A DNA stretch of 64,000 nucleotides from Blastocladiella emersonii ATCC 22665. Taxonomy: Eukaryota; Fungi; Blastocladiomycota. Each line of letters begins with the position of its first letter. Position 1 is the first letter of the stretch. Below, one piece after another: positions 1,255 to 22,699 of this stretch. Location of the stretch: contig JANHCV010000004.1 in assembly GCA_025594325.1 (NCBI GenBank), positions 992,001 to 1,056,000 of the forward strand, written 5' to 3'. Position numbers and translations under genes: made by a program. The notes under the pieces are model-generated. The model worked only from the letters and a program-made list of their open reading frames with translations, did no database searches and was not told where the DNA came from.

Positions 1255-3010
1255 ATGTCGCGCCCGAACCCGTCCAAGCGCAAGAACCGCCAATACAACC
1301 GCCTGCCCAACGAGGACACGGCGTTACTGCCTGGTCCGCAGGGCGGGCCCATGCCCGGCGCCGGCGCCAGCAGCACGGGCTACGCGGCGCACCCGGGCGC
1401 GGCGGCCGCGGGCGCCAAGCTCAAGCCCAAGCAGCCCAACCGCACGACCAAGACGGCGCAGAAGCTGACGCTGTTCCCCGAGGACGGGCCGACGATGCAG
1501 CCGCTGTTGTCCGAGGACATGCTGCTGCCCGAGGCCGAGGACCTGTTCGACCAGCTCACCCACATCCCGCCCGAGCGCATCGGCAAGCTCGACCGCACCA
1601 AGCTGCCGCGCGTCACCTCCTACTGCGTCGCCAACGCGTACCAGTTCGACGAGCTCATCGAGTTCCTCAAGTCGCGCCCACACGTCACCGCGCCCCGCAA
1701 GTTCGACGAGTGCGTCTACGTCGCCCTCAACTCGTCCGTCGGCCAGGTCGTCCCGCAGCCCGCCAACACCTCGGCCGCCGCGCTCGACGCCATGACCCAC
1801 CACCACCACCCGAACATGCACCTCGGCGCGGGCATGCCCGGCATGAACCCCGGCCTCCCGCCCACGGGCCCGTCGCTCGACCTCATGGAGGCGTACCGCG
1901 CCCACTCCGAGGCCATGGCCATGGGCGCCGGCGTCGGCGCCGCCCAGGAGAAAAAGGGCGAGCTGTTCCTGTTCGAGTACGGCGTCGTGGTGTTCTGGGG
2001 CTTCTCGGCCACCGAGGAGCGCACGCTGCTGCGCCAGTTTGCGCCGTTCGAGTCGGAACCGCTCGACGCGGCCGACGTGGAGGGCACCCGCGAGGAGTTC
2101 AGCTTCCACTACAACAGCAGCTACCAGCCCCGCATCTACAACGATATCATCTCGCTCAAGTCCGACAACTATATGGCCAAGCTCACCATCTCGCACGCCA
2201 TTGCGCAGTCCACCAAGCTCACCCTCTTTGAGGGCCTCATGGACGAGACCATCTCCGCTACGAAACACATCCCGCAGACCATGGCCGAGACGGGCAAGGT
2301 GCCCATGTCGCGCACCGCTATCACCAAAAAGATCGGCCAGCTGTTCGTTACTCGCGCTCGCTCGCGGGACTGGGGCTCGCCGATCTGACTCTGACTCGCC
2401 TCGCCGTGTCGCGTTTAGGTTCATCATGCGCATCAACGTGAATCTCGTGAGTAACGTCCTGTACGTCCCGCTCTCTGCATCGCCCGACATACCGGCGATC
2501 GGCGATCGACTGACCTGAAAATCCCACCATGTAGCGATGTCCCCGAGGTCTTCTGGGGCGAGCCTGCGCTCGAGCCCTTGTACCAGGCCATCCGCGGCTA
2601 CCTCGAGATCAATCAACGCGTCGAGCTCCTCAATCAACGACTCGCCGTCATTTCCGACCTCCTCGACATGTACGCTTCGCTCCCCTCGCCCACTATCGGA
2701 CAGCTCGCTCACACGCGGTCATTGTTAGGCTCAAGGAACATCTGACGAGCACGCACGGCGAGGTACGTGAAACCTTCCGCTGGCACTCGTCCGCGTCTGA
2801 CGGACTATCTGCCTCCTCAACCGCTTCCCACCAACCCCATGCGTAGGCCCTCGAGTGGATAGTCATCATCCTAATCGGTGCGCTTTCTCTCTCACTGGGA
2901 GCTCGCAGAGCTGCTCACTGACGCTCCAAACTCTAGGGTTCGAGATCGTCATTGGTATCGTGACGATTCTCTTCGACTACTTCTCGTACATCAAGGGCAA
3001 CCACGAGTAG
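1255..3010 (+). CDS. RMD1: RMD1/DUF155 family protein (sporulation protein RMD1-like)
   Basis: ORF 1255-2342 has RVTSYCVANAY, FLFEYGVVVFWG, YQPRIYNDII, KLTISHAIAQSTKL. Spliced small exons give LFIMRINVNL..LDVPEVFW..LYQAIRGYLEINQRVELLNQRL..LEWIVIILIGFEI. TAG at 3008-3010. Confidence 0.9.
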
Positions 3011-3526
3011 GATGCTATTGCGAAACGGACATTATATAGTACCCATTTGACCAACTCATTGATGCGTGTCACCACCGGGGCACTTGCTGACTGGGAGGAA
3101 TACCCCCGTCGTCCAACTTGGCGAGCGCGAATCGACCCCCCCCGTGTGGTTTCCCGCACCTCCCGCACTTCTGTCCACGGTGACCGTTTGCTGCGTGCGA
3201 AGCTGCGTACCGTAGATTTACTTGTTCTGCTGGCAGCGAACGTATGACTAGCGTGCGAGGCGGCTCTGCCGCTTGCGTCCTCTCGCACCTGCTTTGCACA
3301 CAATCAATGTTCAGCGAGGACACATCAACCGCGGCCGGACAGAACAATGTGATCTGGTGATGCGCGACATGAGAAACGCTTAGCGACATGCGGCCTATGA
3401 AGCTGTGATGAGGTATTGATTGGGACGCGTTGCGCCACTCACATGATCGCGACTTGAGTCGAGCCAGGGGATCTGGTCGAGTACAAGAGCATTGCGAGCG
3501 AGTGCGGGACCAAGGGTTCTGAAGAA

Positions 3527-3949
3527 GTGCATATCGAGGCCAAGCCGAGCGCTGGGGGTGCCGGAGCGGCGGCGGCTCCGCCGAAGCGCGAGATCCGGTC
3601 GCGCGACCTGGCCAAGGAGCCGTTCCTGGACGACACCGAGTACTACCAGGACCGCAAGGAGGAGTTCGATCTGCTCGTGCAGCTGATGCAGGAGAACCCG
3701 AAGCCGCCAAAGGCGCAGCACCAGCAGATCGACCTGTTCAAGCGGTTCCGCACGTACTGGCTGCTCGCGTGGATCATCATCAACGGCGGCCTGCTGTTCA
3801 TCCTGCTGTCGCCCGCGTCGGTCGGCATCAAGAACCCGGACTTTGCCGCGGGGTACCTCAACCTGCTGTTCAACGTCGTGCTCGGGTTCTCGGCGTTCCG
3901 GTTCGTCTTCTCGACGCTGTACCGCATCCAGAACGTGTGGTTCTCGTAG
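3527..3949 (+). pseudogene. Duplicated last exon of the chitin synthase (orphan 3' fragment)
   Basis: Same protein as CHS terminal exon 19731-19309 (VHIEAKPS...RIQNVWFS*). No upstream CHS exons on this side; in-frame TGA at 3455. Confidence 0.85.
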
Positions 3950-4110
3950 GTGCGACGCGACGACCGCCCGTCGTGCCCGTTTGTGATGTTATCCCTCCCC
4001 TACCCTTTGTGAATTTGCGTTTTTGCTCTCATACACCTCCGGTCCTTGTCTCTCGTATCCCTCGCGTCCAAACTCGCAGCCATGAGCCAAGACTTGAACG
4101 AGCTGCTGCA

Positions 4111-4419
4111 TCCACACCACGACAGCGCCCGACTCGCGGGCCCACTGCAGGTTGGTGAACGAGAACTTGGCGATCTGCAGCTGCGCGGCCGTCGACAGCA
4201 CGATGATGGCGAGCAGGATGACGGCGATCAGGGCAAACGACGCGATGATGCCGTGGAACACGCCGCGCGCCGATTTCGGGTTGTTGCCGAGCGACGCGAT
4301 GAAGGTCATGAGCAGCAGCAGCAGCGCGTAGAAGGGCCGCGACACGAGCAGCACCGCGCGCAGCACCTGGAACCCGGCCGAGTTCTCGTTGCTCGGGATG
4401 AACTTGACGTTGTCGGCCG
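4111..4419 (-). pseudogene. Copy of internal CHS exon segment (mirror of 18839-19147)
   Basis: Direct-orientation copy of 20245-20547 ([29 protein letters not shown]...RESGAVV). Confidence 0.9.
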
Positions 4420-4987
4420 GGTCTGCGACTGGGACAGCTGCTGGGCGCAGTTGCAGCCGAGCTGTATCTGCGACTGCGACTCGGGAACAAGCGAAAGTGG
4501 AGAAGCGTGGCCAAGGACTGTTGCCGCAGCCGTCGCGGTTCAGCAGCAGCAGCGGCGCCCCGCATACCTCGACCTCTCACTGCAAGGCGCGCAGCGGCTC
4601 ACGGGGCCTGCAGCTTCACCTGACCCGTGCGGACCCGCGGCGGATGCGCAGTGACTTATTGCTCTCTCAAGCCCCCGCAGTCTCTACCCGCCTCGACCAA
4701 CCGAGCCGAGAGAGCAGGTCGATGCCGCTTCAACTCAACTCAGCGGACGTTGCCCCCGAGACGGCGGCGCAATCCACGACCACGATCCATCCGATTATAT
4801 TGCAGGGAGTGCAGTGCTTCATGGTAGTGGGCGAGTGAGGGCGCAAGGGAGGGGCCGCGGCGGCGCTCGTCCGTGGCATGGGACACGGAGCGATCAGCGC
4901 GCTGTCTCGCCCCGCTCACGTGTTTGTTCGACGCGTCTCCACTTTCTCGTGTTCTCGCACGGTCGAGGGGCGAGACAAATAGGCGCA

Positions 4988-5047
4988 ATAGAGATAGACA
5001 TAGAGATAGACATAGACATAGACATAGACATAGACATAGACATAGAG
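4988..5047. repeat. (GACATA/GAGATA)n hexanucleotide microsatellite, mirrored at 18211-18270
   Basis: About 10 tandem hexamers read directly. Confidence 0.95.
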
Positions 5048-5982
5048 GTAAAGAACGGGATGTAGTTTGTTCAAACAGAGAGAGACCACGGCCAACCGAC
5101 GCCGCGGTTCGGTCCCACGCGCCGTCGCGCTCGCTTGAGCCCGCCCCAGCCTCGTCTGGTCGGGCCGGTCGAGAACCGGCTCGCCGACTGACGCGCGTGT
5201 CACATGCTGCAGTACGAGAGGGTCAAGTGGAGGAGAAGGGGTCAGAACGAGGAACGGGTCCCGATTAATGGGAACTGCGACACCGCCGCCACGACGCACG
5301 ACTTGGGATGCACCAAAGGTCGCTACCCCACTCACCGCTGGCGCGTCGAAACCACCCACAACCCAGCTCCATCCAGCCTGCCCTCGAGGTTGACAACGAC
5401 CCCAGCCGACCAGCAGAGAGAGTCCCATACTCGCAGAGGTGCCGCACCATCGGTCCCGCTACTCGCTTGGCGAGGTCACCGCGCGGGACGGGTGATGCGG
5501 CACGTGCGTCGAGGACCCTTCGCGGCGCGATCCAGGAGACGATGACGAGTTGGAGAGACAGCGGACGAGGGAGCGATTGGTGGGTATGCGACAAGAGTCT
5601 GGACGATGGGTGCGCGCAAGGGGTGAAGAGGCAGCAGCCGACTGCGGGAGCGGCACACCTTGGATGCACCCGTTTTGCACGCCGCAGGTAGGCTGATACA
5701 ATGGGTTGGCTTCCCAGACGGGATGCGAGGGAAACATCAAGGGGAGGTGAGGTGGTGGAGGGGAGAGGAGGTGCGTCGCGATACAGGAGCCGTGCGGGGC
5801 GGTGATGGGGACGCGCGAGTGAAGTGCGCGCGAGCGGGTCGACGTGTACCAGTCCAGCAATGTTGGGCGAGACGAGACGAGACGAGCAGCGTGTCGAGGT
5901 CGTAGATGGCCATGGTCGGGACGCAAAGCGTACGCGGGGTGAATGTTCTTGGGCGCGGTAGCAGTGGGATGGTGTCGAGAGT

Positions 5983-8900
5983 CTGTTCGGGAGATGAGCA
6001 AGCAAAGAGTCAGCGAGTAGCACTCGGGATGCGAGTTGGAGATGAGCCGTACCGAGTCCCAAAGTGGTCGACGAGTTGAGGTACCCGACGGCCCGCCTCG
6101 AGCGCGAGTACTTGAGCCGCGCAAGCAAACGTGACACTGTTGAGGGCCTGGTCCGCCGCGGTGCTGGTGGTGGTGGTTGGTCTCTCGAGTCGGCGACGTG
6201 TACCAGAGTCCGACGAGATGTTGAGGCTGTCGTAGCTACACGAAGCGGCGGTGTGAGCACGCGATCGGTCAACCGCGGCGGCAGCAGAATGTACGAGTGC
6301 CGTAAAACCCCTCGATGATCACCGTGGACCGCCGAGAGCGTCGAGCTGCGACACGACCTCCTTGAGCAGCGTGTACGAGCGCTTGTTGAGAACTCGGTCG
6401 GCCGTCGTGACTGACGTCGCACGGCAACATGCCCGTGTTAGAGCCTGACGAAATGTCGAAGCCGAGTGGGCCACGGAATCGACGTGGACAAGAACAGCTT
6501 GCGCGCACGCGTGGTGGCCAAGTCGTGGCCCTGGTCGTGTGGCACCTACGCGAAACGGCAGTGTGAACACGCGATCGGTCGACCGCAGCGACAGCAGAAC
6601 GTACGAGTGCGGAGAAACATATCGATCACCACCATGGACCGCCGGTAGAACTCGAGTCGCGAGAGCCGCGACTGCTGCAGCCGATCAGGCGCGTGAGAGC
6701 GTGAAGACGACCCCAGCCGCTGTGGTGATGGTGCAGCCCCACGCCGTGTTGATGGCCTGGCGACGCCAGGCTCCGCCGGACTTGGGGTTGATGCGCCACG
6801 ACCACTACACGATGCACGAGTCAGCTACGAGGTTTCGTTTGCAGGAGCACACGTTGCAAAGTACCGAGAATGTACGCCCAGCTGGCGCCAGAATGGTCGG
6901 CGACCAGGCGCGTCGCGTCGGCGATGTGCGCCAGAGCCCGACGAGGTGTTGAAGCTGCCGAACCGCCGCTGGATCAATCTGGACGCCGACGAGATCATGT
7001 CGCGCGCGCGAGGCGACGATCGTGATGTGGTTCCACCCGTTCTGTGATGGCTACACGAGGCAAACGGGTGAACACGCGATCGGCAACCGCGCTCGGATCA
7101 GGACATACGAACGCTGGGGCGTTACTGTACCCCCCTTGGTTACCATGAACCGCGCGAGTCTCGAGCTGCGGCTGCCGTCGATCAGGTGCGCGGGAGCGCG
7201 ACGTCGAGCTGGTTCTCGATCCCGACGCGATGCTGAGGAGGAACCGCCGCCACTTGATCAGTGCGGGCGCGGGCGAGTAGAAGTTGCGCGCGCGCACACG
7301 AGGCCTGGATGATGGTGTTGTGGTGGCGCGACGACTACACGAGGGCAGCGATGTGAGCATGCGATCAGCTGACCGCGGCGACGGCGGAACGTACAAATGC
7401 CGTGAAAGTCCTTGACAATCACCGCCGAGCGCCGAGCGCCGAAAGCGTTGAGCCGCGTCTGCCGCCGATGAGGTTCAAGAGTGTGGTGGCGACCCAGCTG
7501 CTGCGTCGACGGCACGGCGATGTCGCGCAGTGCATGGTCGCGCGAGTAGATCGACCCGCAACGGTGGTCACGGGCAAGTGGATGGGGAGGAGCTTGTCGA
7601 GCGCGAGTAGGTGAGACGCGATGGCGCGCGTGGCGGTCGACGACTCGGTCGGCATTGGCGATGGCGGTCGTGGCAGGCGCCGCGCGGTGAGAGGCACGTA
7701 CTGGAAGCCGACCCGACGAGATGGTGAGGCTGAGCCGGCGACTGCATCGACGCGGAACGAGAACGTCGCGCTCGCGCGCGTCATACTGGCACGTCATACC
7801 GATCGTGCGCAGGCCACACAAAGCAAAGGGGTGAGTGAACACGCGATTTGCCAGCTGCGCCAAGATGAGAACGTACGGTTGCTGAAATAGAGCTCCTTGA
7901 CCACCAAAAACCACACGATTGTCGAGCCCTGGACGCCGTGGATCAGGTACGAACGAGAAGACGTGATGGCGAGCGAACTTGACGATGCGTCGACGGCAGG
8001 GCAGGGCGCCGCAGAGCTTGGCCAGGATCGCGCGCCGACCTGTCACGGCGGCCGCGAGAGCATGGAGATGACGAGGAGCGCCTAGATCGCGCACGTACTT
8101 ACGCAGCGAGTGCACGCGTTGTTGATGATGAACTGGTCGACCTGGGTGACGGCGGTGGTTGGCGCCGCGCATGTCGCCGCGCGTATTTACTTGAATCCGA
8201 CGAGATGGTGAGGCCGAGCCGCCACTGGATCGACGCGGGAGCAGAAGTGAACCAGTCGCGCGCGCGCGAGGCCATGATGGTGTCGCGGTAGTGCTGCGGC
8301 TACACGAGCTCGAGGTCGAGTAGTGAGTACGCGACTGGCCAACTGCCCAAAAATCGGGTCGTACAAACGCTGAAGCCGAACCCTTTGGTCGCCGTAAACT
8401 GTGCAGATGTCGAGTCATGGCCGCCGTCGATCAGGTGCGCGAGAGCGCGACGTCGAGCCGGTCCTCGAGCCCGACGAGATGTTGAAGAGGAACCGCCACC
8501 ACTTGATCGATGCGGACGCGGGCAAGAAGCAGGTTGTGCGCGCGCGAGCCCTTAATGATGGCGTCGTGGTGGCGCTAGGACTACGCGAAACAGCGGTGTG
8601 AACATGCAATCGGTCGACCGCACAGAGGTTACGACAGGGCGTACGAATGCCGAGGAGCCCTCGACGATCATGGTGGAGCGCCGAGAGCGTTGCGTCGCGA
8701 CTGCCGCCGATCAGATGCGCGCGAGAGCGTGAAGACGACCCGACCCGACCCGGCTGCCGCGCCGACAGCACGGCGCGGTGCTGCCGAGCATGGCCGAGCG
8801 AGTGGATCGGTCCACAACGGCGGCCACGAGCACGAAGATGATGATGAGCTCGTCGAGCGCGAGTAGGTGGGTTGAAGACTCGGTCGGCCTTGACAATGGC

Positions 8901-9943
8901 GGCCGTGGCAGGCGCCGCGAGGCGGGAAGCACGTACTGGAATCCGACGCGACCCGACGAGATGATGGTGAAGCTGAGCCGGCGACTGGATCGACGCGGGC
9001 GCGAACTTCGCGCGCGTCGCGTCATACTGGCGCGTCATACCGATCGTGGGCCGGCTACACAAAGCAAAGGGGTGAGTGAACACGCGATTGGCCAACTGCG
9101 CCAAGATGAGAACGTACGATGGCTGAAGTCGACCTCCCGGGTCACCGTGAGCTGCGCGAGCGCCGTGCCCTGGACGCCGTGGATCAGGTACGAGAAGACG
9201 CGATGGTGAACTTGACGACGCGTCGACGGCACAACAGGGCGTTGTTGGGCTTGGCCAGGCTCGCACGTCGACCCGTCACGGCGGCCACGGGCATGGAGAT
9301 GACGAGGAGCTCCTTGCGCACGAGTGCTAGAGCTGCGAGTGCGCGGCCATGACCATGAGGATGGCGAGGAGCGCCTCAATCGCGCGCGTACTTGAGCAGC
9401 GGGTGCACATGTCGTTGGCGAACTTGGTCGGCCTTGGTGATGGTGGTAGTGGTTGGCGCCGCGCGTGTCGCCGCGCGTACTTGAACCCGACGAGATGGCG
9501 AGGCCGAGCCGCCACTGGATCGACGACGCGGTAGCGTACGAGAACAGGTTACGCGCACACACGAGGCCGCGATGGCGCCGTGGTAGTGCTGTGACTACAC
9601 AAGGAAGAAGTGTGAGTACGCGACCGGCCAGCTGCCCAGAGATCAGGCCGTACGAAGGCCGAACCCGAACTACTTGGTCGCCGTGAACTGCACGAGCGTT
9701 GAGCCGTGGACGCCGTCGATCAGGCGCGCGAGAGCGTGATGCCGCGCCGCGCTTGTCGCCGAGCATGGCCGGGCGAGTAGGTCGATCCGTCACGGCGGCA
9801 ACGAGCATGACGCGGGCGGGAGGAGAGCGAGAAGGAGAGGAGCGAGACGAGGAAAATCGAGCTCTACACAAGAGTTACGGGCGGGATGGCACGAGGATAA
9901 CAAACGGGAGTCAGCAACACGATCATATTGTTGTTGCTGGTAC
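5983..9943 (-). repeat. Degenerate tandem exon+intron cassette array (left-arm copy)
   Basis: Mirror of 13315-17275. Confidence 0.85.
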
Positions 9944-10081
9944 GGGGAGGCGTTGCGACCGGGCCGTTCGAGGAAGGAAGGGCATGATGAGGATGAGGCA
10001 AGTCGTGGTCGCGGCCACCGACACTAATGACGGCCGAGGGAAAGGAATGAGAGAGATGAGCGCGAGCCTCCTCAACCAATG

Positions 10082-10220
10082 CGTCTCGCCGCCGCCGACG
10101 CTCAGGATGAGAGAGGGAAGGAGATGAGAGCCCGCCGCCGACGCTCAGGATGAGAGGAGGTGATGGTGAAGGGATGGGAGCGTCGGCCACCGACTCGTCT
10201 CGCCGCCGCTGACGCTCAGG
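10082..10220. repeat. Three-copy ~24-bp mini repeat CGCCGCCGACGCTCAGG(ATGAGAG), mirrored at 13038-13176
   Basis: Copies near 10090, 10133 and 10201 (variant) separated by purine-rich linkers. Confidence 0.85.
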
Positions 10221-10835
10221 GTCGGGAAAGCGAGGAAGGAGGAGATTCGTCGTCGAGATAAGCTTGAAAGTCCCCCGTACCATTCATGTTCATGCGCGCG
10301 CACACACACACGGGCAGCGAGCGAGGCGAGGTGATGGTTGATACATGGTGTTGTGCGGGAGGATGCTCGACCCGGATCGGATCGCGGGGGCTGATCATGG
10401 TCGATGCGTGCGCGCCGTCGAGTACTGGCGGTTGCAGGGAGTATGGAGGGCGCGAGCGCGAACGTTGGAGGGAGAGGGTAGGCCGCGGGAGCGCGAGCGT
10501 GCGGCGGTAGCGATGGTGCCCGGGCGGGCAGCAAGGCGCGCATCGCGACGCGCCTGGATCAGTGCGTGAAACTACATTTTCGAGCGGATCATAACATAGC
10601 AACGCCGGGAATGAGTCGCGGCGCGAGACACGGCGGGTGCGGCGTGCGCAAGTGTCTCGCGCGGTGTCTCGCGGCTCTCATCAAGAGTGGCGAAAACGTT
10701 CACGTGCGCCCGCTGGCGGGGACCATCGTCGATTGCCGCGGTAAGAGGAGCGCGGCGGCGGGGGACGCGTCTCGAAAATGGAGACACCCGGGACGCGTCG
10801 CGCCCGATGCGAGACGTCACGCGAGCGGCGCGTGC

Positions 10836-12422
10836 GTGCGAGATCTTGAGACAACTCGTGATAGGCAGCGCGCCGCCCGGAGCCTCCACGCGTTACGCAA
10901 CATTCGCGAGAAGTCACACGAGCGATAACATGACGCGGGAGCGTGAACGCCTCACCAATGTGTTTGCCGCGGCCTGCTGTTTGGCTCTCCTTCGTGGCTC
11001 ACGATCGATTGGAGCGGTCAACAAGCCTGCGAGTCCGTCGGCGCGCCCTGAGCGCCTTGAAGCCGCTGAAGATGGCCACGACGCAGCGAGTTCAACCACA
11101 GCGGATCCTTCTCATGCTACTCCCTTCCTGGCTCATATCAGCGTCACCGATGCACTGGGCCCGTGCTTGCGTCGAGGGCACGGACTCGCGGAAGATTGCG
11201 GGCTTCTGACGCGGTACAAAAAGGTGTACTTGTCGTGGTTGAGCACACGACCAGTGCGAGCCCTGCCAAGGAGGCGGCTGCCGCCGAACGCTGGTGTGGA
11301 CAGCTGCATGGCGTGGAAGACGATCGAGCGGGCTCGGCAAACCTCCACGAAAACGAGACTCAGAGCGGATCCGGGCGACATGGACGAGAATCGGCGAGAT
11401 TGGGGAGAAGCCGAGGGGGTTGCCCCATGTATTGCTTTCGAGTTCCATGAGCCGTCACGGCGCGAGTTCTGCTGCATGAAGTCAAGTGCGAGGAGTGCGG
11501 GTCGGGCGTCGAGAATGGCGAGGAAGATGGCGTACCAGCGGGGATAGTCGGGCGGAGCGCAAGCCAGAGCGCGAGCCACCTCGAGCAGGCGTGGGCGTCG
11601 ATCACGTTGCTCCTGCAGGGGGCGCAACGCGACGTGTTTGACTGCGCACGCTCTCGCGCTCTACACAAGATCACCGGTATCAGACAGCGGGAGTGTTGAG
11701 TCCGGAGGCACATGAAGCAAAATGCTGACCGGACCTTCAGCGGTCCCGTGGCCGAAGGGGTAGTACGGGCCGTTGCACGCGCGACTTGGCCTCGAGCCGC
11801 AAGAGCCCGATCGCGAAGCAGGACTCGTTGAGGTGGTGTCTCGCCCCACTCCCGTTCAGCTCCAGGAACGATCTAAGCAACGCTAAGGTCACGCATGGCG
11901 AAGTCGATGCGGGTGGGACGCGCGAGGCTCGCGGATGGGTCGGCGATGGTTACGATGTTCGCAAAGCGACGGCCCGTCTGGATGTGGCCAACTGAAGCCG
12001 AGTGGCGCATCTCGAGCAGTGCGATTCTCATACACATGATATGAGTTGGTCCGTCGTATCGCTGTACATGGGCGAGATCATGGCGGCTGCCGCAGGAACA
12101 GACCGATACTGGAGTAGGAGCAGGGATATCGTTGCAGCTAGTTCCCGGGGCTTCTGTGCATAGGATTCATGGTCTCGACAATTGTCGATTTTGACATGAG
12201 TGCGAGGGAGAGCAGCGATCGACGAGGCGATCACGCAGGCGATCACGAAGGCGAAAGCACTCAGCAACGGGTCACGTGGTGTGAGCGACACGTTCGCTCT
12301 GTGAGCCGGCTTCAGGATGTTTTTTGACACCGGGCAGACACCCGTCATGATTCTCATCATGATTCTCGATTTTTCCTATAAGCTTGCTCACATTGATCCC
12401 GGACGAACCCCCGCGCCGCGCG
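10836..12422. other. Unique 1,587-bp palindrome spacer (loop)
   Basis: Symmetry breaks exactly after 10835 and before 12423. Visibly less GC-rich than the genes. No recognisable family. Confidence 0.9.
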
Positions 12423-13314
12423 GCACGCGCCGCTCGCGTGACGTCTCGCATCGGGCGCGACGCGTCCCGGGTGTCTCCATTTTCGAGACGCGTCCCCCGC
12501 CGCCGCGCTCCTCTTACCGCGGCAATCGACGATGGTCCCCGCCAGCGGGCGCACGTGAACGTTTTCGCCACTCTTGATGAGAGCCGCGAGACACCGCGCG
12601 AGACACTTGCGCACGCCGCACCCGCCGTGTCTCGCGCCGCGACTCATTCCCGGCGTTGCTATGTTATGATCCGCTCGAAAATGTAGTTTCACGCACTGAT
12701 CCAGGCGCGTCGCGATGCGCGCCTTGCTGCCCGCCCGGGCACCATCGCTACCGCCGCACGCTCGCGCTCCCGCGGCCTACCCTCTCCCTCCAACGTTCGC
12801 GCTCGCGCCCTCCATACTCCCTGCAACCGCCAGTACTCGACGGCGCGCACGCATCGACCATGATCAGCCCCCGCGATCCGATCCGGGTCGAGCATCCTCC
12901 CGCACAACACCATGTATCAACCATCACCTCGCCTCGCTCGCTGCCCGTGTGTGTGTGCGCGCGCATGAACATGAATGGTACGGGGGACTTTCAAGCTTAT
13001 CTCGACGACGAATCTCCTCCTTCCTCGCTTTCCCGACCCTGAGCGTCAGCGGCGGCGAGACGAGTCGGTGGCCGACGCTCCCATCCCTTCACCATCACCT
13101 CCTCTCATCCTGAGCGTCGGCGGCGGGCTCTCATCTCCTTCCCTCTCTCATCCTGAGCGTCGGCGGCGGCGAGACGCATTGGTTGAGGAGGCTCGCGCTC
13201 ATCTCTCTCATTCCTTTCCCTCGGCCGTCATTAGTGTCGGTGGCCGCGACCACGACTTGCCTCATCCTCATCATGCCCTTCCTTCCTCGAACGGCCCGGT
13301 CGCAACGCCTCCCC

Positions 13315-16300
13315 GTACCAGCAACAACAATATGATCGTGTTGCTGACTCCCGTTTGTTATCCTCGTGCCATCCCGCCCGTAACTCTTGTGTAGAGCTCG
13401 ATTTTCCTCGTCTCGCTCCTCTCCTTCTCGCTCTCCTCCCGCCCGCGTCATGCTCGTTGCCGCCGTGACGGATCGACCTACTCGCCCGGCCATGCTCGGC
13501 GACAAGCGCGGCGCGGCATCACGCTCTCGCGCGCCTGATCGACGGCGTCCACGGCTCAACGCTCGTGCAGTTCACGGCGACCAAGTAGTTCGGGTTCGGC
13601 CTTCGTACGGCCTGATCTCTGGGCAGCTGGCCGGTCGCGTACTCACACTTCTTCCTTGTGTAGTCACAGCACTACCACGGCGCCATCGCGGCCTCGTGTG
13701 TGCGCGTAACCTGTTCTCGTACGCTACCGCGTCGTCGATCCAGTGGCGGCTCGGCCTCGCCATCTCGTCGGGTTCAAGTACGCGCGGCGACACGCGCGGC
13801 GCCAACCACTACCACCATCACCAAGGCCGACCAAGTTCGCCAACGACATGTGCACCCGCTGCTCAAGTACGCGCGCGATTGAGGCGCTCCTCGCCATCCT
13901 CATGGTCATGGCCGCGCACTCGCAGCTCTAGCACTCGTGCGCAAGGAGCTCCTCGTCATCTCCATGCCCGTGGCCGCCGTGACGGGTCGACGTGCGAGCC
14001 TGGCCAAGCCCAACAACGCCCTGTTGTGCCGTCGACGCGTCGTCAAGTTCACCATCGCGTCTTCTCGTACCTGATCCACGGCGTCCAGGGCACGGCGCTC
14101 GCGCAGCTCACGGTGACCCGGGAGGTCGACTTCAGCCATCGTACGTTCTCATCTTGGCGCAGTTGGCCAATCGCGTGTTCACTCACCCCTTTGCTTTGTG
14201 TAGCCGGCCCACGATCGGTATGACGCGCCAGTATGACGCGACGCGCGCGAAGTTCGCGCCCGCGTCGATCCAGTCGCCGGCTCAGCTTCACCATCATCTC
14301 GTCGGGTCGCGTCGGATTCCAGTACGTGCTTCCCGCCTCGCGGCGCCTGCCACGGCCGCCATTGTCAAGGCCGACCGAGTCTTCAACCCACCTACTCGCG
14401 CTCGACGAGCTCATCATCATCTTCGTGCTCGTGGCCGCCGTTGTGGACCGATCCACTCGCTCGGCCATGCTCGGCAGCACCGCGCCGTGCTGTCGGCGCG
14501 GCAGCCGGGTCGGGTCGGGTCGTCTTCACGCTCTCGCGCGCATCTGATCGGCGGCAGTCGCGACGCAACGCTCTCGGCGCTCCACCATGATCGTCGAGGG
14601 CTCCTCGGCATTCGTACGCCCTGTCGTAACCTCTGTGCGGTCGACCGATTGCATGTTCACACCGCTGTTTCGCGTAGTCCTAGCGCCACCACGACGCCAT
14701 CATTAAGGGCTCGCGCGCGCACAACCTGCTTCTTGCCCGCGTCCGCATCGATCAAGTGGTGGCGGTTCCTCTTCAACATCTCGTCGGGCTCGAGGACCGG
14801 CTCGACGTCGCGCTCTCGCGCACCTGATCGACGGCGGCCATGACTCGACATCTGCACAGTTTACGGCGACCAAAGGGTTCGGCTTCAGCGTTTGTACGAC
14901 CCGATTTTTGGGCAGTTGGCCAGTCGCGTACTCACTACTCGACCTCGAGCTCGTGTAGCCGCAGCACTACCGCGACACCATCATGGCCTCGCGCGCGCGC
15001 GACTGGTTCACTTCTGCTCCCGCGTCGATCCAGTGGCGGCTCGGCCTCACCATCTCGTCGGATTCAAGTAAATACGCGCGGCGACATGCGCGGCGCCAAC
15101 CACCGCCGTCACCCAGGTCGACCAGTTCATCATCAACAACGCGTGCACTCGCTGCGTAAGTACGTGCGCGATCTAGGCGCTCCTCGTCATCTCCATGCTC
15201 TCGCGGCCGCCGTGACAGGTCGGCGCGCGATCCTGGCCAAGCTCTGCGGCGCCCTGCCCTGCCGTCGACGCATCGTCAAGTTCGCTCGCCATCACGTCTT
15301 CTCGTTCGTACCTGATCCACGGCGTCCAGGGCTCGACAATCGTGTGGTTTTTGGTGGTCAAGGAGCTCTATTTCAGCAACCGTACGTTCTCATCTTGGCG
15401 CAGCTGGCAAATCGCGTGTTCACTCACCCCTTTGCTTTGTGTGGCCTGCGCACGATCGGTATGACGTGCCAGTATGACGCGCGCGAGCGCGACGTTCTCG
15501 TTCCGCGTCGATGCAGTCGCCGGCTCAGCCTCACCATCTCGTCGGGTCGGCTTCCAGTACGTGCCTCTCACCGCGCGGCGCCTGCCACGACCGCCATCGC
15601 CAATGCCGACCGAGTCGTCGACCGCCACGCGCGCCATCGCGTCTCACCTACTCGCGCTCGACAAGCTCCTCCCCATCCACTTGCCCGTGACCACCGTTGC
15701 GGGTCGATCTACTCGCGCGACCATGCACTGCGCGACATCGCCGTGCCGTCGACGCAGCAGCTGGGTCGCCACCACACTCTTGAACCTCATCGGCGGCAGA
15801 CGCGGCTCAACGCTTTCGGCGCTCGGCGCTCGGCGGTGATTGTCAAGGACTTTCACGGCATTTGTACGTTCCGCCGTCGCCGCGGTCAGCTGATCGCATG
15901 CTCACATCGCTGCCCTCGTGTAGTCGTCGCGCCACCACAACACCATCATCCAGGCCTCGTGTGCGCGCGCGCAACTTCTACTCGCCCGCGCCCGCACTGA
16001 TCAAGTGGCGGCGGTTCCTCCTCAGCATCGCGTCGGGATCGAGAACCAGCTCGACGTCGCGCTCCCGCGCACCTGATCGACGGCAGCCGCAGCTCGAGAC
16101 TCGCGCGGTTCATGGTAACCAAGGGGGGTACAGTAACGCCCCAGCGTTCGTATGTCCTGATCCGAGCGCGGTTGCCGATCGCGTGTTCACCCGTTTGCCT
16201 CGTGTAGCCATCACAGAACGGGTGGAACCACATCACGATCGTCGCCTCGCGCGCGCGACATGATCTCGTCGGCGTCCAGATTGATCCAGCGGCGGTTCGG

Positions 16301-17275
16301 CAGCTTCAACACCTCGTCGGGCTCTGGCGCACATCGCCGACGCGACGCGCCTGGTCGCCGACCATTCTGGCGCCAGCTGGGCGTACATTCTCGGTACTTT
16401 GCAACGTGTGCTCCTGCAAACGAAACCTCGTAGCTGACTCGTGCATCGTGTAGTGGTCGTGGCGCATCAACCCCAAGTCCGGCGGAGCCTGGCGTCGCCA
16501 GGCCATCAACACGGCGTGGGGCTGCACCATCACCACAGCGGCTGGGGTCGTCTTCACGCTCTCACGCGCCTGATCGGCTGCAGCAGTCGCGGCTCTCGCG
16601 ACTCGAGTTCTACCGGCGGTCCATGGTGGTGATCGATATGTTTCTCCGCACTCGTACGTTCTGCTGTCGCTGCGGTCGACCGATCGCGTGTTCACACTGC
16701 CGTTTCGCGTAGGTGCCACACGACCAGGGCCACGACTTGGCCACCACGCGTGCGCGCAAGCTGTTCTTGTCCACGTCGATTCCGTGGCCCACTCGGCTTC
16801 GACATTTCGTCAGGCTCTAACACGGGCATGTTGCCGTGCGACGTCAGTCACGACGGCCGACCGAGTTCTCAACAAGCGCTCGTACACGCTGCTCAAGGAG
16901 GTCGTGTCGCAGCTCGACGCTCTCGGCGGTCCACGGTGATCATCGAGGGGTTTTACGGCACTCGTACATTCTGCTGCCGCCGCGGTTGACCGATCGCGTG
17001 CTCACACCGCCGCTTCGTGTAGCTACGACAGCCTCAACATCTCGTCGGACTCTGGTACACGTCGCCGACTCGAGAGACCAACCACCACCACCAGCACCGC
17101 GGCGGACCAGGCCCTCAACAGTGTCACGTTTGCTTGCGCGGCTCAAGTACTCGCGCTCGAGGCGGGCCGTCGGGTACCTCAACTCGTCGACCACTTTGGG
17201 ACTCGGTACGGCTCATCTCCAACTCGCATCCCGAGTGCTACTCGCTGACTCTTTGCTTGCTCATCTCCCGAACAG
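13315..17275 (+). pseudogene. Decayed multi-intron repeat gene / exon+intron cassette array
   Basis: Twelve intron-like segments, mostly GTA[CT]...[CG]TGTAG, 58-80 nt. They are separated by homologous exon-like units (consensus-like HxxxIIxASRARNxFSxAPASIxWRxxLxISSGS and AHLIDGxxxSTLAQFTxTK). Motifs fall in shifting frames with stops. Confidence 0.7.
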
Positions 17276-18838
17276 ACTCTCGACACCATCCCACTGCTAC
17301 CGCGCCCAAGAACATTCACCCCGCGTACGCTTTGCGTCCCGACCATGGCCATCTACGACCTCGACACGCTGCTCGTCTCGTCTCGTCTCGCCCAACATTG
17401 CTGGACTGGTACACGTCGACCCGCTCGCGCGCACTTCACTCGCGCGTCCCCATCACCGCCCCGCACGGCTCCTGTATCGCGACGCACCTCCTCTCCCCTC
17501 CACCACCTCACCTCCCCTTGATGTTTCCCTCGCATCCCGTCTGGGAAGCCAACCCATTGTATCAGCCTACCTGCGGCGTGCAAAACGGGTGCATCCAAGG
17601 TGTGCCGCTCCCGCAGTCGGCTGCTGCCTCTTCACCCCTTGCGCGCACCCATCGTCCAGACTCTTGTCGCATACCCACCAATCGCTCCCTCGTCCGCTGT
17701 CTCTCCAACTCGTCATCGTCTCCTGGATCGCGCCGCGAAGGGTCCTCGACGCACGTGCCGCATCACCCGTCCCGCGCGGTGACCTCGCCAAGCGAGTAGC
17801 GGGACCGATGGTGCGGCACCTCTGCGAGTATGGGACTCTCTCTGCTGGTCGGCTGGGGTCGTTGTCAACCTCGAGGGCAGGCTGGATGGAGCTGGGTTGT
17901 GGGTGGTTTCGACGCGCCAGCGGTGAGTGGGGTAGCGACCTTTGGTGCATCCCAAGTCGTGCGTCGTGGCGGCGGTGTCGCAGTTCCCATTAATCGGGAC
18001 CCGTTCCTCGTTCTGACCCCTTCTCCTCCACTTGACCCTCTCGTACTGCAGCATGTGACACGCGCGTCAGTCGGCGAGCCGGTTCTCGACCGGCCCGACC
18101 AGACGAGGCTGGGGCGGGCTCAAGCGAGCGCGACGGCGCGTGGGACCGAACCGCGGCGTCGGTTGGCCGTGGTCTCTCTCTGTTTGAACAAACTACATCC
18201 CGTTCTTTACCTCTATGTCTATGTCTATGTCTATGTCTATGTCTATGTCTATCTCTATGTCTATCTCTATTGCGCCTATTTGTCTCGCCCCTCGACCGTG
18301 CGAGAACACGAGAAAGTGGAGACGCGTCGAACAAACACGTGAGCGGGGCGAGACAGCGCGCTGATCGCTCCGTGTCCCATGCCACGGACGAGCGCCGCCG
18401 CGGCCCCTCCCTTGCGCCCTCACTCGCCCACTACCATGAAGCACTGCACTCCCTGCAATATAATCGGATGGATCGTGGTCGTGGATTGCGCCGCCGTCTC
18501 GGGGGCAACGTCCGCTGAGTTGAGTTGAAGCGGCATCGACCTGCTCTCTCGGCTCGGTTGGTCGAGGCGGGTAGAGACTGCGGGGGCTTGAGAGAGCAAT
18601 AAGTCACTGCGCATCCGCCGCGGGTCCGCACGGGTCAGGTGAAGCTGCAGGCCCCGTGAGCCGCTGCGCGCCTTGCAGTGAGAGGTCGAGGTATGCGGGG
18701 CGCCGCTGCTGCTGCTGAACCGCGACGGCTGCGGCAACAGTCCTTGGCCACGCTTCTCCACTTTCGCTTGTTCCCGAGTCGCAGTCGCAGATACAGCTCG
18801 GCTGCAACTGCGCCCAGCAGCTGTCCCAGTCGCAGACC

Positions 18839-19147
18839 CGGCCGACAACGTCAAGTTCATCCCGAGCAACGAGAACTCGGCCGGGTTCCAGGTGCTGCGC
18901 GCGGTGCTGCTCGTGTCGCGGCCCTTCTACGCGCTGCTGCTGCTGCTCATGACCTTCATCGCGTCGCTCGGCAACAACCCGAAATCGGCGCGCGGCGTGT
19001 TCCACGGCATCATCGCGTCGTTTGCCCTGATCGCCGTCATCCTGCTCGCCATCATCGTGCTGTCGACGGCCGCGCAGCTGCAGATCGCCAAGTTCTCGTT
19101 CACCAACCTGCAGTGGGCCCGCGAGTCGGGCGCTGTCGTGGTGTGGA
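18839..19147 (+). pseudogene. Inverted 309-bp copy of an internal CHS exon segment, 162 bp past the CHS stop
   Basis: Versus source 20547-20245: 5 substitutions and two 3-nt insertions by my manual alignment. Confidence 0.92.
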
Positions 19148-19308
19148 TGCAGCAGCTCGTTCAAGTCTTGGCTCATGGCTGCGAGTTTGGACGCGAGGGA
19201 TACGAGAGACAAGGACCGGAGGTGTATGAGAGCAAAAACGCAAATTCACAAAGGGTAGGGGAGGGATAACATCACAAACGGGCACGACGGGCGGTCGTCG
19301 CGTCGCAC

Positions 19309-22300
19309 CTACGAGAACCACACGTTCTGGATGCGGTACAGCGTCGAGAAGACGAACCGGAACGCCGAGAACCCGAGCACGACGTTGAACAGCAGGTTGA
19401 GGTACCCCGCGGCAAAGTCCGGGTTCTTGATGCCGACCGACGCGGGCGACAGCAGGATGAACAGCAGGCCGCCGTTGATGATGATCCACGCGAGCAGCCA
19501 GTACGTGCGGAACCGCTTGAACAGGTCGATCTGCTGGTGCTGCGCCTTTGGCGGCTTCGGGTTCTCCTGCATCAGCTGCACGAGCAGATCGAACTCCTCC
19601 TTGCGGTCCTGGTAGTACTCGGTGTCGTCCAGGAACGGCTCCTTGGCCAGGTCGCGCGACCGGATCTCGCGCTTCGGCGGAGCCGCCGCCGCCCCGGCAC
19701 CCCCAGCGCTCGGCTTGGCCTCGATATGCACGTCCTCAGACCCTTTCGTCCCCCAGCTCGTCTCTGCGGGCGGGCAAATTTGAGTGTTGGTAAGTGTCGG
19801 TGAGTGGGGTGAGTGGTGGTGGATGCGGAGAGGTAGAGGTCGAGTGGTGGCGGTGATCGCGAGTCGGCCGGGGTGGATCGGAGGTCAAAGGAAGCGAGTG
19901 AGTCACGCAAGGAAACGTACCCGAGATGTTGCTGAACGCGAAGATCTAGACAAATGTTCCGATGGATGATAGTTGTGGGCGGTGGGCGGTGGGCGGTGGG
20001 TGGTGGTGGGTGGTGGTGGGTGGAGTTGGACGGTGGTGGCGAAGATCAAGCGAGGGCAGTGAGTTGGACACATTTGAGCGACGCTTCGTGAGACAGGAAC
20101 GGACGAAACGTACCTGCAGGACGTTGATGTAGAACGGGCTGAGCAGCGTGTACTGGATGATGTTGAAGATCGGGTGGTACCAGTCGCCGTAGATGAGCGA
20201 CGACACGATGTAGAGGCCCCACGTCGCGAGCAGCGCGAGCAGCGTCCACACGACGGCACCCGACTCGCGGGCCCACTGCAGGTTGGTGAACGAGAACTTG
20301 GCGATCTGCAGCTGCGCGGCCGTCGACAGCACGATGATGGCGAGCATGATGACGGCGATCAGGGCAAACGACGCGATGATGCCGTGGAACACGCCGCGCG
20401 CCGATTTCGGGCTGTTGCCGAGCGACGCGATGAAGGTCATGAGCAGCAGCAGCGCGTAGAAGGGCCGCGACACGAGCAGCACCGCGCGCAGCACCTGGAA
20501 CCCGGCCGAGTTCTCGTTGCTCGGGATGAACTTGATGTTGTCGGCCGCGGGCTGCTCCATGAACTTGACGAACCCGGCGACGAGGTAGTGGTACGAAAAG
20601 TAGAAGTTGCAGAGCGAGATGTAGCTGAAGATGAAGTTGAGGATGAGGTACGCGAACTCGAACGACAGGACGAGCTTGCGGACGAACGTGTGGCCCGACG
20701 TCCAGATGCGGTTGGCGTGCATGAGGGCGTACAGCAGCGCGAACGTGGACCCGTTGAGCCAGCGGCGACGCTGCGGGATGAGCTCGGTGAACTCGTCGGG
20801 CGCGTCCGTCACGGCCACCGACGACTTGTCGTACCGCAGCACCCAGCCGGCGTCCTTGCGGGTCGTGATTTCGAAGCACAGGATGCTAAGGAAAGGCGAG
20901 ACGTGAGTGGACAGGGGCGGCGAGGGCAGAAAGCGAGGAGGGGCGAAGGACAAGGGACGCGTACCGATCTTCCGCGAGGTACATGTTCCGCTGGAAGATA
21001 CCGCCAGATACCTCGACTTTTTCGCCGTAGAAGTACTCCTGGAGCGGGCGGCCCTCGAGAGCGGCGTAGCGATACGCGGAGAAGGCTCCGGGAAGTACCG
21101 TGATGTACCCCATCATACTTTCGATCGGCTTGTCCAAAATGTTGCTCATTTTGTACTCGAAATTCTGCGCAGCGACGATCGGGTTGAGCAGCGACTTGAA
21201 ATCGCCCTCGACGGCGATCTCGCCGCAGGCGCCGCCGACCTGGGGGTCGAGGAACATCTTCCAGAGGCGGTAGATGGACAGCGGCTGCGGCTGGGTGCCG
21301 GCGTCGATGAGCACGACCACGTTGGGCTTGAGGACCGGGCAGAAGGCCGTGAGGGCCCAGCGGTGCGAGTTGATCTTTTTGGCGTTCTTCTCCTTGAGGC
21401 AGAAGATGGTCTGCATCGGCACGATCTTGCGCTTGGTCGACGTGAGGTTGTTGACGAGCGTCGTGCCCTTCTCGGGCGCCGAGTCGAAGTTGTTGGTGAT
21501 GGTGGACTCGAACAGGTGCGCCGAAACGTCCTCGCCGTTGAAGGTGGCCCGGATCAGGCCGTCGCGGTAGCCGCCCATCATGGACAGGATCGTGATCACG
21601 GCCGGGTCGATCTTAGCCCTACCATCTGAGACGATGGCGACAACGACCTTGCGCCAGGCGTCCTCCTGGCCCCAGTGGGCCGAATCGGCGTCCAGCATCT
21701 GCCGAATGTTGTCGTGCACCGCCTGCATCGTTTTTACAAAAAGTTGGCCTGGTTCCTGCACAAACGGGCGAGAAACAGTCAAAACAAGCGATTCCCAGCG
21801 ATTCCCATCGATACCCGTCGATTCCCGTCGAGTTAGAAGAAAGGGGAGCGCGTACGTTGTACATGGTGACGACGATCATGAGCTCGATGTCGTTCTTCGA
21901 GTGGATCAGGTTGTACTTGCCGGGGAACTCGGCGGGCGTGCCCGTGACGGCCGTGTAGCGAAGCCTAAACGTTGGGATCAAAAGGAAGCGAAGGGATGAG
22001 TGAGAAAGTGAGTGGGGAGCGGGCGAGGCGCGAGGCGCGAGGAGGCGGCCGCGGCCACGCGACGCGTTCGGCAGCCACGTACGTCGTGAACTCACTGTCC
22101 TGGCCGGGCTGTAGCAGCTGCGGCGGGATCTTGACCGTGACGGGGTTCGGCTGGCCGACCTGAGCGCGGATCGTGAGGGCCTTGGCCGGGTCGAAGGCCT
22201 CGCCGTTGGCCGCGGCCGCGACGGTCGGCGACACCGTGGCCGCAGCAGCACCGGCACCGAGGGACGTGGTGGCGGCGTAGGTCGTCGTCGTCGTGGCCGT

Positions 22301-22699
22301 GGTGATGACCGAGGGCGCGCCAGTCGCAATCTGGACGCGGTGGTCGGCCGACGAGGCGGCCGTGGGCGGCGGGTAGGCGCCGGTGGCCTGCGGCATGAGG
22401 CCGGCGGGCGGGGCGCCCGAGAGGTCGACCATGGCGTAGCCCTGCTGCTGCTGGACCTGCGTCTGCTGCTGGTGGTGGTACACGGTGTGCTGCTGCTGCT
22501 GCTGGCCGGGCATCGGGGCCTGGGCGTAGACGGGCGACGGCGGCGAGTAGGCGCCGTTCCCGGTCGGCATGGGCATCATGGGCGCGGCGTTGACGACGTT
22601 GCCGGGCGGGTACGGCAGGGCGCCGGTCGAGTCGCCGCCAGCGCCGCCGAGCGGCAGGTAGCCGTTGGCCCGGTTGGGCGAGACGGGGATGCGATCCAT
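19309..22699 (-). CDS. CHS: Chitin synthase, division 1 (class I-III type)
   Basis: Motifs [80 protein letters not shown]. Multi-exon; start taken at ATG 22699; TAG at 19309-19311. Confidence 0.96.

Follow-up and report, generated by a model that had tools for sequence, protein, structure and literature searches.

The chitin synthase gene (CHS) of Blastocladiella emersonii carries, a short distance beyond its stop codon, an inverted copy of part of its own fourth exon. We propose, with a probability of about 0.6, that this copy is a pseudo-exon: some 305 bp of exon 4, duplicated recently in inverted orientation by a local rearrangement and without coding function. It most likely reflects the tendency of this region to rearrange and is best read as a by-product of that, not as a purpose-built regulator. 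The arrangement would still confer a latent capacity for double-stranded RNA, in that a CHS transcript extending 470 nt beyond the stop is predicted to form a near-perfect intramolecular duplex of 300 bp. Coordinates below are those of the window, i.e., the whole 64,000-nt stretch of DNA that was analyzed.

CHS occupies 19309-22699 on the minus strand, with its ATG at 22699-22697 and its TAG at 19311-19309; the boundary of the first intron is left approximate. The gene has the makeup of a division-1 fungal chitin synthase and is apparently intact and under constraint. Pfam matches it to Chitin_synth_1 (PF01644, E = 1.3e-56), with weak matches to Chitin_synth_2 and Glyco_trans_2_3 at exon 4, and the motifs QNFEYK, LAEDR, QRRRW, and SWGTKG, which comprise the QxxEY, EDR, QRRRW, and SWG signatures, can be read from the translation of an open, spliceable frame. 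A protein homology search with the catalytic exon returned 926 homologues at E <= 1e-20, whose names are those of chitin synthases of class 1/2; the best of them are CHS fragments with 62% identity. Exon 4 (20114-20885) runs from ILCFEITT through QRRRW to YINVLQ. It is followed by a 25-nt microexon encoding IFAFSNIS (19921-19945), whose two flanking introns (20113-19946 and 19920-19764) were placed by eye from GT..AG boundaries and reading frame, and then by the last exon (19309-19763; ETSWGTKG ... VWFS, ending in the TAG). Between the stop and the copy lies a 3′ flank, 19148-19308, in which GC falls to about 0.60 and which contains a U-rich tract at ~19290-19230. Judging from these letters, the normal poly(A) site is assumed to fall within this flank.

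Gapped local alignment upholds the original prediction that 18839-19147 (309 nt, plus strand) is an inverted copy of 20547-20245, a minus-strand segment of exon 4 that follows the QRRRW motif and codes for transmembrane helices. The copy differs from its source by five substitutions, at 18850, 18977, 19042, 19136, and 19140, and by two insertions of 3 nt each, which follow 18932 and 19130; divergence is about 1.6%. A repeat search recovers the relationship as two pairs of inverted arms, 18936-19140 with 20249-20453 (205 nt, 98%) and 18839-18944 with 20442-20547 (106 nt, 99%), and weak homology beyond the edges of the copy dies away at 18832 and 19153. Since a 42-mer from the segment occurs three times in the window and shuffles give an expectation of 0.00, a chance origin of the repeat is excluded.

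The copy covers 101 of the ~900 CHS codons, and its flanks are unrelated to the gene. What was duplicated is an internal part of the gene only, with no promoter, start codon, or splice context: the CHS frame is closed upstream by a stop at ~18679 and offers no Met until within the copied helix. The differences from the source comprise three non-synonymous and two synonymous changes, few in all, plus a pair of in-frame slips, of which one falls within a run of CTG; such a mix would fit drift. A Pfam search of the copy gave no match, a protein homology search with its open reading frame plus the unique tail of that frame gave no homologue, an Rfam search of 17500-20600 gave no RNA family, and an exact scan of metagenomes for the 42-mer gave no occurrence.

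Because the copy is sense on the plus strand, it lies antisense inside any CHS read-through RNA. It had been predicted that such an RNA, reaching 18839, would fold into a stem of ~300 bp beginning about 162 bp past the TAG, with a loop of 1,097 nt, or ~770 nt after splicing. These figures hold: 161 nt separate the TAG from the copy, the loop measures 1,097 nt in the genome and 772 nt once the introns on either side of the microexon are subtracted, and RNA folding predicts that 300 pairs form between the arms once the read-through RNA is spliced. The predicted minimum free energy of the spliced RNA to 18839 is -984 kcal/mol, versus -422 kcal/mol when the copy is left out, and the arm duplex itself is assigned -694 kcal/mol. 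The longest perfectly paired stretches between copy and source reach about 90 nt. In having near-perfect inverted arms of ~305 bp that match CHS, interrupted by only the five substitutions and two small indels, the locus has the form of a hairpin-RNA locus.

Could the inverted copy be an error of assembly, made by a mis-joined haplotig or by a chimeric read that folds back on itself? The copy lies within one of two 7.3-kb inverted arms, described below, whose perfect identity is suspicious at first glance, and all four public DNA runs come from one sample, which is perhaps also the source of the genome assembly. Against this, contigs built independently from k-mers of those runs bridge every examined junction, including both of the differing outer flanks of the arms. 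X1 record 3 spans the copy edge at 18839 and X1 record 5 the edge at 19147, and X2 record 14 (18851-20136) runs from the copy through the last exon of CHS and on across the microexon with its introns. The junction of the right arm with CHS is bridged by X1 record 6 and again by X2 record 14; the outer junction of the left arm is bridged by X3 record 21, whose loose end is the reverse complement of 3478-3507. The case for two copies of the arm is drawn from these bridging contigs and not from read depth, which is about 235 versus about 100 in X1, gives a weaker signal in X3, and gives none in the low-coverage X2. Moreover, a fold-back could not have produced the five substitutions and two indels, and the palindrome is diverged at its edges and interrupted by a unique spacer of 1.6 kb. 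Since the contigs bridge both junctions of the copy and tie it to the body of CHS, the copy is no assembly artefact; that reading is largely refuted, and we hold it to be scarcely credible.

One X4 contig (19932-20453, 3.3x depth) bears copy-type letters at 20347 and 20412. Gene conversion between exon and copy was considered for these letters and rejected; at 3.3x depth, and with copy and exon identical over the 88 nt that separate the switch points, a switch of path in the de Bruijn graph is the simplest explanation.

The right arm (12423-19755) of a 16-kb palindrome, delimited by inverted repeat search and arm alignment, carries the fragment together with the CHS 3′ flank and nearly the whole last exon. 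The right arm also holds a repeat-cassette gene, and a single-copy spacer of 1,587 nt (10836-12422) separates it from the left arm (3503-10835). Because these three elements travel together in the arm, the exon-4 fragment recurs without change at 4111-4419 (minus strand), beside an orphan copy of the last exon (3503-3949, plus strand), the pair spanning 3503-4419. The orphan lacks both an upstream CHS and a start codon and is preceded, 13 codons upstream, by an in-frame stop. Neither the palindrome nor the copy at 4111-4419 figured in the original prediction.

The arms measure 7,333 nt, of which 7,270 nt are free of mismatches (3566-10835 versus 19692-12423). Seven inter-arm differences all fall in the outermost 63 nt and all at third codon positions, which points to a gene-conversion boundary there; the edge of the right arm at 19755 is 8 nt inside the CHS last exon. 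Sex-chromosome palindromes under gene conversion likewise have long arms of identical sequence around a unique spacer and diverge abruptly at the outer edge, and it is most likely that arm-to-arm gene conversion has kept the present arms identical as well. This likeness applies to the carrier and not to the 305-bp fragment. The repeat-cassette gene in the arm is probably coded on the plus strand, and GC skew places the probable end of its coding sequence around 17800-18000, some 0.9 kb before the copy, and suggests that the gene converges on CHS. On the other side, a plus-strand gene ends at 3008, upstream of the left-arm copy, and plus-strand transcripts through 4111-4419 would be antisense to CHS exon 4.

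The exon-4 copy is a separate and older event than the palindrome, being 98% identical to its source versus 100% between the arms. We propose that a local DNA rearrangement inserted the inverted segment 161 nt downstream of the CHS stop, the likely route being break repair, or template-switching during replication, in which a neighboring segment was copied backwards. Fold-back priming on the small exon-4 repeat was also considered as the origin of the palindrome and was rejected, the centre of the palindrome (10836-12422) being 6.4 kb away from the fragment.

A repeat search of the window places three separate inverted duplications within 1-28000 and none within 28000-64000. The nearest available relative of CHS, at 62% identity in the search with the catalytic exon, has the homologous transmembrane region and no inverted repeat of at least 40 nt in 13.7 kb. 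The location of the copy in a palindrome, the three inverted duplications in 28 kb, its youth, and the lack of a counterpart in the relative together lower the prior for a purpose-built device, and we infer that the copy is probably neutral. Not all observations sit easily with an origin as a rearrangement by-product. The fragment has persisted to ~1.6% divergence without being lost, it lies 161-470 nt from the stop, within reach of ordinary poly(A)-site scatter, and perfect pairing over stretches of up to about 90 nt would make good Dicer substrates.

Might the copy instead be used on the plus strand? It could supply the converging arm gene with an exonized transmembrane segment or a 3′ UTR, or it could encode a small two-helix membrane protein started at the internal Met. 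The CHS frame is open from ~18682 to a stop at ~19264-19266 and both indels are in-frame; however, an open frame is to be expected in so young a copy, and the searches found neither a Pfam match nor a protein homologue. The ratio of three non-synonymous to two synonymous changes shows no constraint, and GC skew suggests that the coding end of the arm gene is still ~0.9 kb upstream. Plus-strand use is, in our estimation, highly unlikely. Even less weight attaches to the idea that the 300-bp inverted pair is a recombination substrate that flips the 1.1-kb segment with the CHS 3′ end as an on/off inversion switch. Inverted repeats of ~300 bp can support inversion, but no joint of the flipped form was present at 10% or more in the DNA contigs, and neither a recombinase nor any other switch feature lies nearby.

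A more serious competitor, although an unlikely one, is an incidental or constitutive source of hairpin siRNAs, in which read-through of a weak poly(A) site by some CHS transcripts would yield the 300-bp stem and diced siRNAs would damp both CHS and the hairpin RNA, with no stage switch. The predicted fold is overwhelming and the copy begins close to the stop, both of which favor this possibility. Transcription through the left-arm copy, which lies downstream of the plus-strand gene ending at 3008, or from the convergent plus-strand neighbor suggested by GC skew, could supply further antisense RNA. There is also a precedent in the hairpin-RNA loci of Drosophila simulans, born from inverted exon fragments near the parent gene (PMC10317233). 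As to machinery, the available part of an RNAi survey, which does not include B. emersonii, records Dicer in one blastoclad, Allomyces, and detects none in another, Catenaria, whose proteome is <90% complete (PMC12663654). Strong self-silencing would, in addition, be costly for a gene that is intact and apparently constrained.

That cost and the Catenaria result also weigh against the stronger proposal of the original prediction, namely that CHS alternates, by regulated alternative polyadenylation, between a productive short mRNA and a longer isoform that forms a hairpin and silences the gene, for instance in wall-less zoospores versus walled stages. What speaks for a toggle is geometry alone, i.e., the U-rich tract ahead of the copy and the predicted fold. 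The fragment is young and lineage-specific and sits amid three inverted duplications, the nearest available relative has no counterpart, no element in the sequence points to a regulated distal poly(A) site, and no link to life stage is apparent; we consider the toggle most improbable. It is tempting to carry the idea further, to a CHS mRNA with its own off-switch, in which stage-regulated read-through at the proximal poly(A) site would give the 300-bp hairpin, siRNAs would silence wall synthesis in zoospores, and the left-arm copy would act in trans as a source of antisense RNA. This scheme, built on predicted folding, is a long shot.

Among known systems, the closest resemblance is to Drosophila hairpin-RNA loci. 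For example, hp58 of D. simulans was built from a piece of CG17385 exon 2 in inverted orientation, located one gene away from CG17385, and the same paper cites work in which plant microRNA genes were born via inverted duplication of target sequence (PMC10317233; Allen et al. 2004, as cited there). The CHS locus shares with the fly loci a recent inverted exon fragment near its parent, near-perfect arms of several hundred bases, and perfect complementarity to the parent mRNA over long stretches. The differences are in the arms and in the evidence. Both arms of the Drosophila loci are extra copies within a separate non-coding transcript, for which siRNAs and Dicer dependence have been shown, whereas at CHS, known from its DNA sequence, the working exon is one arm and the gene's own 3′ flank holds the other.

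A functional analogy is offered by mouse CTN-RNA and by inverted Alu pairs, where mRNA isoforms carry inverted repeats in long 3′ UTRs. As in those cases, the CHS duplex would exist only in a longer poly(A) isoform and could alter the fate of the mRNA. There, however, the UTR supplies both arms, each a copy of a transposon, and the RNA is retained in the nucleus or edited instead of entering RNAi, while one CHS arm is coding sequence and the CHS isoforms are hypothetical. A survey of rice pseudogenes describes, in the part available, duplicated fragments whose pairing with the parent mRNA gives rise to endogenous siRNAs (PMC2708354). The CHS copy is likewise a reversed partial gene copy whose RNA would be antisense to the parent; unlike the rice sources, it is in cis to the parent segment, 1.1 kb away, and is known from DNA alone. 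The siRNAs from pseudogene fragments in mouse oocytes are a similar case.

For now, the value of the locus is modest: it is a clean, read-supported inverted partial gene duplicate that arose beside its parent gene, and such duplicates are the raw material for hairpin-RNA loci in flies and plants. Because five substitutions and two indels separate copy-derived from gene-derived RNAs, CHS is a ready test case. To our knowledge, endogenous RNAi is almost unstudied in the early-diverging fungus B. emersonii. If the hairpin is used, this would be a rare natural case in which a gene's own coding exon serves as one arm of an RNAi trigger, and it would tie cell-wall synthesis to the zoospore cycle.

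The chitin synthase gene (CHS) whose 3′ flank holds the inverted fragment looks intact in the minus-strand reading. Its start ATG is at 22699–22697, the large catalytic exon ends at 20967, exon 4 spans 20885–20114, a 25-nt microexon (IFAFSNIS) occupies 19945–19921, and the last exon, 19763–19309, closes with a TAG. The catalytic exon matches Pfam Chitin_synth_1 (E = 1.3e-56), and the motifs QNFEYK, LAEDR, QRRRW, and SWGTKG are all four in frame. The microexon interrupts a conserved motif immediately before SWGTKG and is flanked by introns of 168 and 157 nt. In the 3′ flank, a U-rich, GC-poorer tract at about 19290–19230 is the only visible candidate for a poly(A)-site feature.

The original prediction held that this flank carries an inverted copy of a CHS exon segment, and the copy is present as described. 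A repeat search returned two adjoining inverted pairs, 18936–19140/20249–20453 (205 nt, 98%) and 18839–18944/20442–20547 (106 nt, 99%), which gapped alignment resolves into a single copy, 18839–19147, of segment 20547–20245. Divergence from the source is about 1.6%, with five substitutions (18850, 18977, 19042, 19136, and 19140) and two 3-nt insertions in the copy, which follow 18932 (within a CTG run) and 19130; homology fades at about 18832 and 19153. The source segment codes for transmembrane helices C-terminal to QRRRW. The predicted spacing and loop sizes are also right: the copy lies 161 nt past the CHS stop, and the loop between copy and source is 1,097 nt in the genome and 772 nt once spliced. 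Just outside the fragment are short nested inverted repeats (18281–18355, 20 nt, 80%; 18301–18327/18750–18776, 27 nt, 85%), which may be chance matches or element-end remnants.

Contigs built independently from four DNA runs of one sample were aligned to 16700–22600. In run X1, record 3 (18338–18880) spans the outer junction of the copy, record 5 (19101–19731) spans the inner junction, and record 6 (19702–20288) connects the last exon with the CHS body, as does record 14 of run X2 (18851–20136), which also includes the copy. Since contigs span the junctions, and since copy and source differ by substitutions and indels, unlike any fold-back product, the inverted copy is not an assembly artefact, a reading that retains just a small share of the probability. 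A similarly small share goes to an inversion switch: flipped joints at ≥10% were absent from the contigs of this interval.

A 42-mer of the copied segment occurs three times in the window, against 0.00 occurrences expected by chance, and the third match, at 4217–4258, exposed a far larger palindrome. The interval 12423–19755 is an inverted repeat of 3503–10835, so that arms of 7.3 kb and a unique spacer of 1,587 nt make up a palindrome of 16.2 kb. The right arm ends within the CHS last exon, 8 nt from its edge. It takes in almost the entire exon together with the 3′ flank, the inverted fragment, and an adjacent repeat-cassette gene, all of which the left arm mirrors. Thus, a second fragment, identical to the first, lies at 4111–4419, and an orphan last exon with its 3′ flank lies on the plus strand at 3503–3949. 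This orphan exon is preceded by neither CHS nor a start codon, and its frame meets a stop 13 codons upstream. An unrelated plus-strand gene, with its TAG ending at 3010, lies about 500 nt ahead of it. Reads also contain the left outer junction: the loose end of record 21 of run X3 is the reverse complement of 3478–3507, and the left-arm letter at 19693 is present in X1 record 5. Word depth in X1 is about 235x for arm contigs versus about 100x for the CHS body, matching two arm copies; X3 shows this ratio less strongly, and low-coverage X2 does not show it. Over 16700–18472, the summed contig depth in X1 is 3–10 times single-copy, with variant letters at 16867, 17542–17562, and 17754, so that this stretch of the arm probably belongs to a family with further copies elsewhere in the genome.

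Base-by-base comparison of 3566–10835 with 19692–12423 found no mismatches over 7,270 nt, whereas the outermost 63 nt (3503–3565 versus 19755–19693) contain seven. Beyond 3503 and 19755, the flanks are unrelated. All seven mismatches fall at third codon positions in the CHS last-exon frame (chance about 5e-4); five are synonymous and the others are Cys/Trp and Glu/Asp. This abrupt switch from identity to divergence looks like the edge of gene conversion across an older duplicate of coding sequence, and the third-position differences point either to conversion across an older coding paralogue or to a patch from another CHS paralogue. As the carrier of the fragment, the palindrome falls among those homogenised by gene conversion.

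Across the whole window, a scan for repeats of at least 100 nt found three separate inverted duplications: the palindrome, the 305-bp CHS fragment, and a pair of about 730 bp (23627–24351/27259–27986, 97% identity, spacer about 2.9 kb) just upstream of the CHS gene. All are confined to the first 28 kb, a local hot spot; the other 36 kb has none. The arm gene, 13300–17400 (mirror 5850–9950), consists of homologous cassettes, each an exon plus an intron. A higher-order period of about 1.25 kb runs through them, and its direct-repeat families are 78–86% identical. GC skew suggests that it is coded on the plus strand and ends near 17800–18000; it would therefore converge on CHS, leaving about 0.9 kb between its end and the fragment. 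In this gap, about 12 units of a (TCTATG)n microsatellite at 18200–18276 (mirror 4982–5058) form the AT-richest spot between the two converging genes and a candidate shared termination zone.

The closest CHS in the protein collection (L001:2304–5047, on a 22.7-kb metagenomic contig) has only 62% identity in the catalytic exon. It has the same domain order and a homologous transmembrane region (49% identity over 136 residues), and its contig contains no inverted repeat of at least 40 nt in 13.7 kb and no inverted self-copy. Together with the 1.6% divergence, this fits a young, lineage-specific event, although the contig is weak evidence because the homologue is distant. An exact scan of metagenomes with the 42-mer gave no match.

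We favour, at a probability of about 0.6, the reading that the fragment is a partial duplicate of exon 4, inverted and of recent origin, a by-product of rearrangement with only a latent dsRNA capacity. A local rearrangement would have dropped the duplicate into the CHS 3′ flank, and the fragment would then have been carried along, or homogenised, inside the palindrome arm. The physical part of the original prediction, that read-through CHS RNA would form a stem of about 300 bp, is sound as a fold prediction: the spliced RNA from 20547 to 18839 (1,384 nt) is predicted to form 300 pairs between the arms at an MFE of −984 kcal/mol, versus −422 kcal/mol without the copy, and the duplex of the two arms alone is predicted at −694 kcal/mol. 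The longest perfectly paired runs are about 90 nt. The folded RNA used a microexon shifted by one base, which leaves the arms unaffected. No Rfam family was found at 17500–20600.

Such a stem might yield hairpin siRNAs, incidentally or constitutively, from CHS read-through; we consider this unlikely, even when antisense RNA supplied by the left-arm copy or by convergent transcription is counted in. A 2025 survey lists a non-canonical Dicer in Allomyces macrogynus and none detected in Catenaria anguillulae, whose proteome is <90% complete, and Blastocladiella emersonii is outside that survey (PMC12663654); for Allomyces, an earlier platform has a table with eight genes under one of its RNAi-component columns (PMC4290597). 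That poly(A)-site choice toggles CHS between productive mRNA and a self-silencing hairpin, as originally proposed, appears highly improbable, a regulatory role being made less likely by the palindrome and duplication context. Use of the copy on the plus strand takes another small share: its CHS frame is open between about 18682 and about 19266. A start codon is missing ahead of the copied segment, and neither Pfam nor the protein search returned a match.

The nearest documented kind is that of hairpin-RNA loci born of inverted exon fragments near the parent gene, such as hp58 of D. simulans, which lies one gene away from its parent CG17385 (PMC10317233); the plant proto-microRNA model, as cited in that paper, is similar. 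What defines a hairpin-RNA locus is that both arms lie in one transcript, that its small RNAs depend on Dicer, and that the target is derepressed when RNAi is lost; the analysis of the CHS copy covered DNA sequence, DNA reads, and predicted folding. Unlike in hp58, one arm at the CHS locus is the working exon and the other lies in the gene's own 3′ flank, so that trigger and target would be the same molecule.
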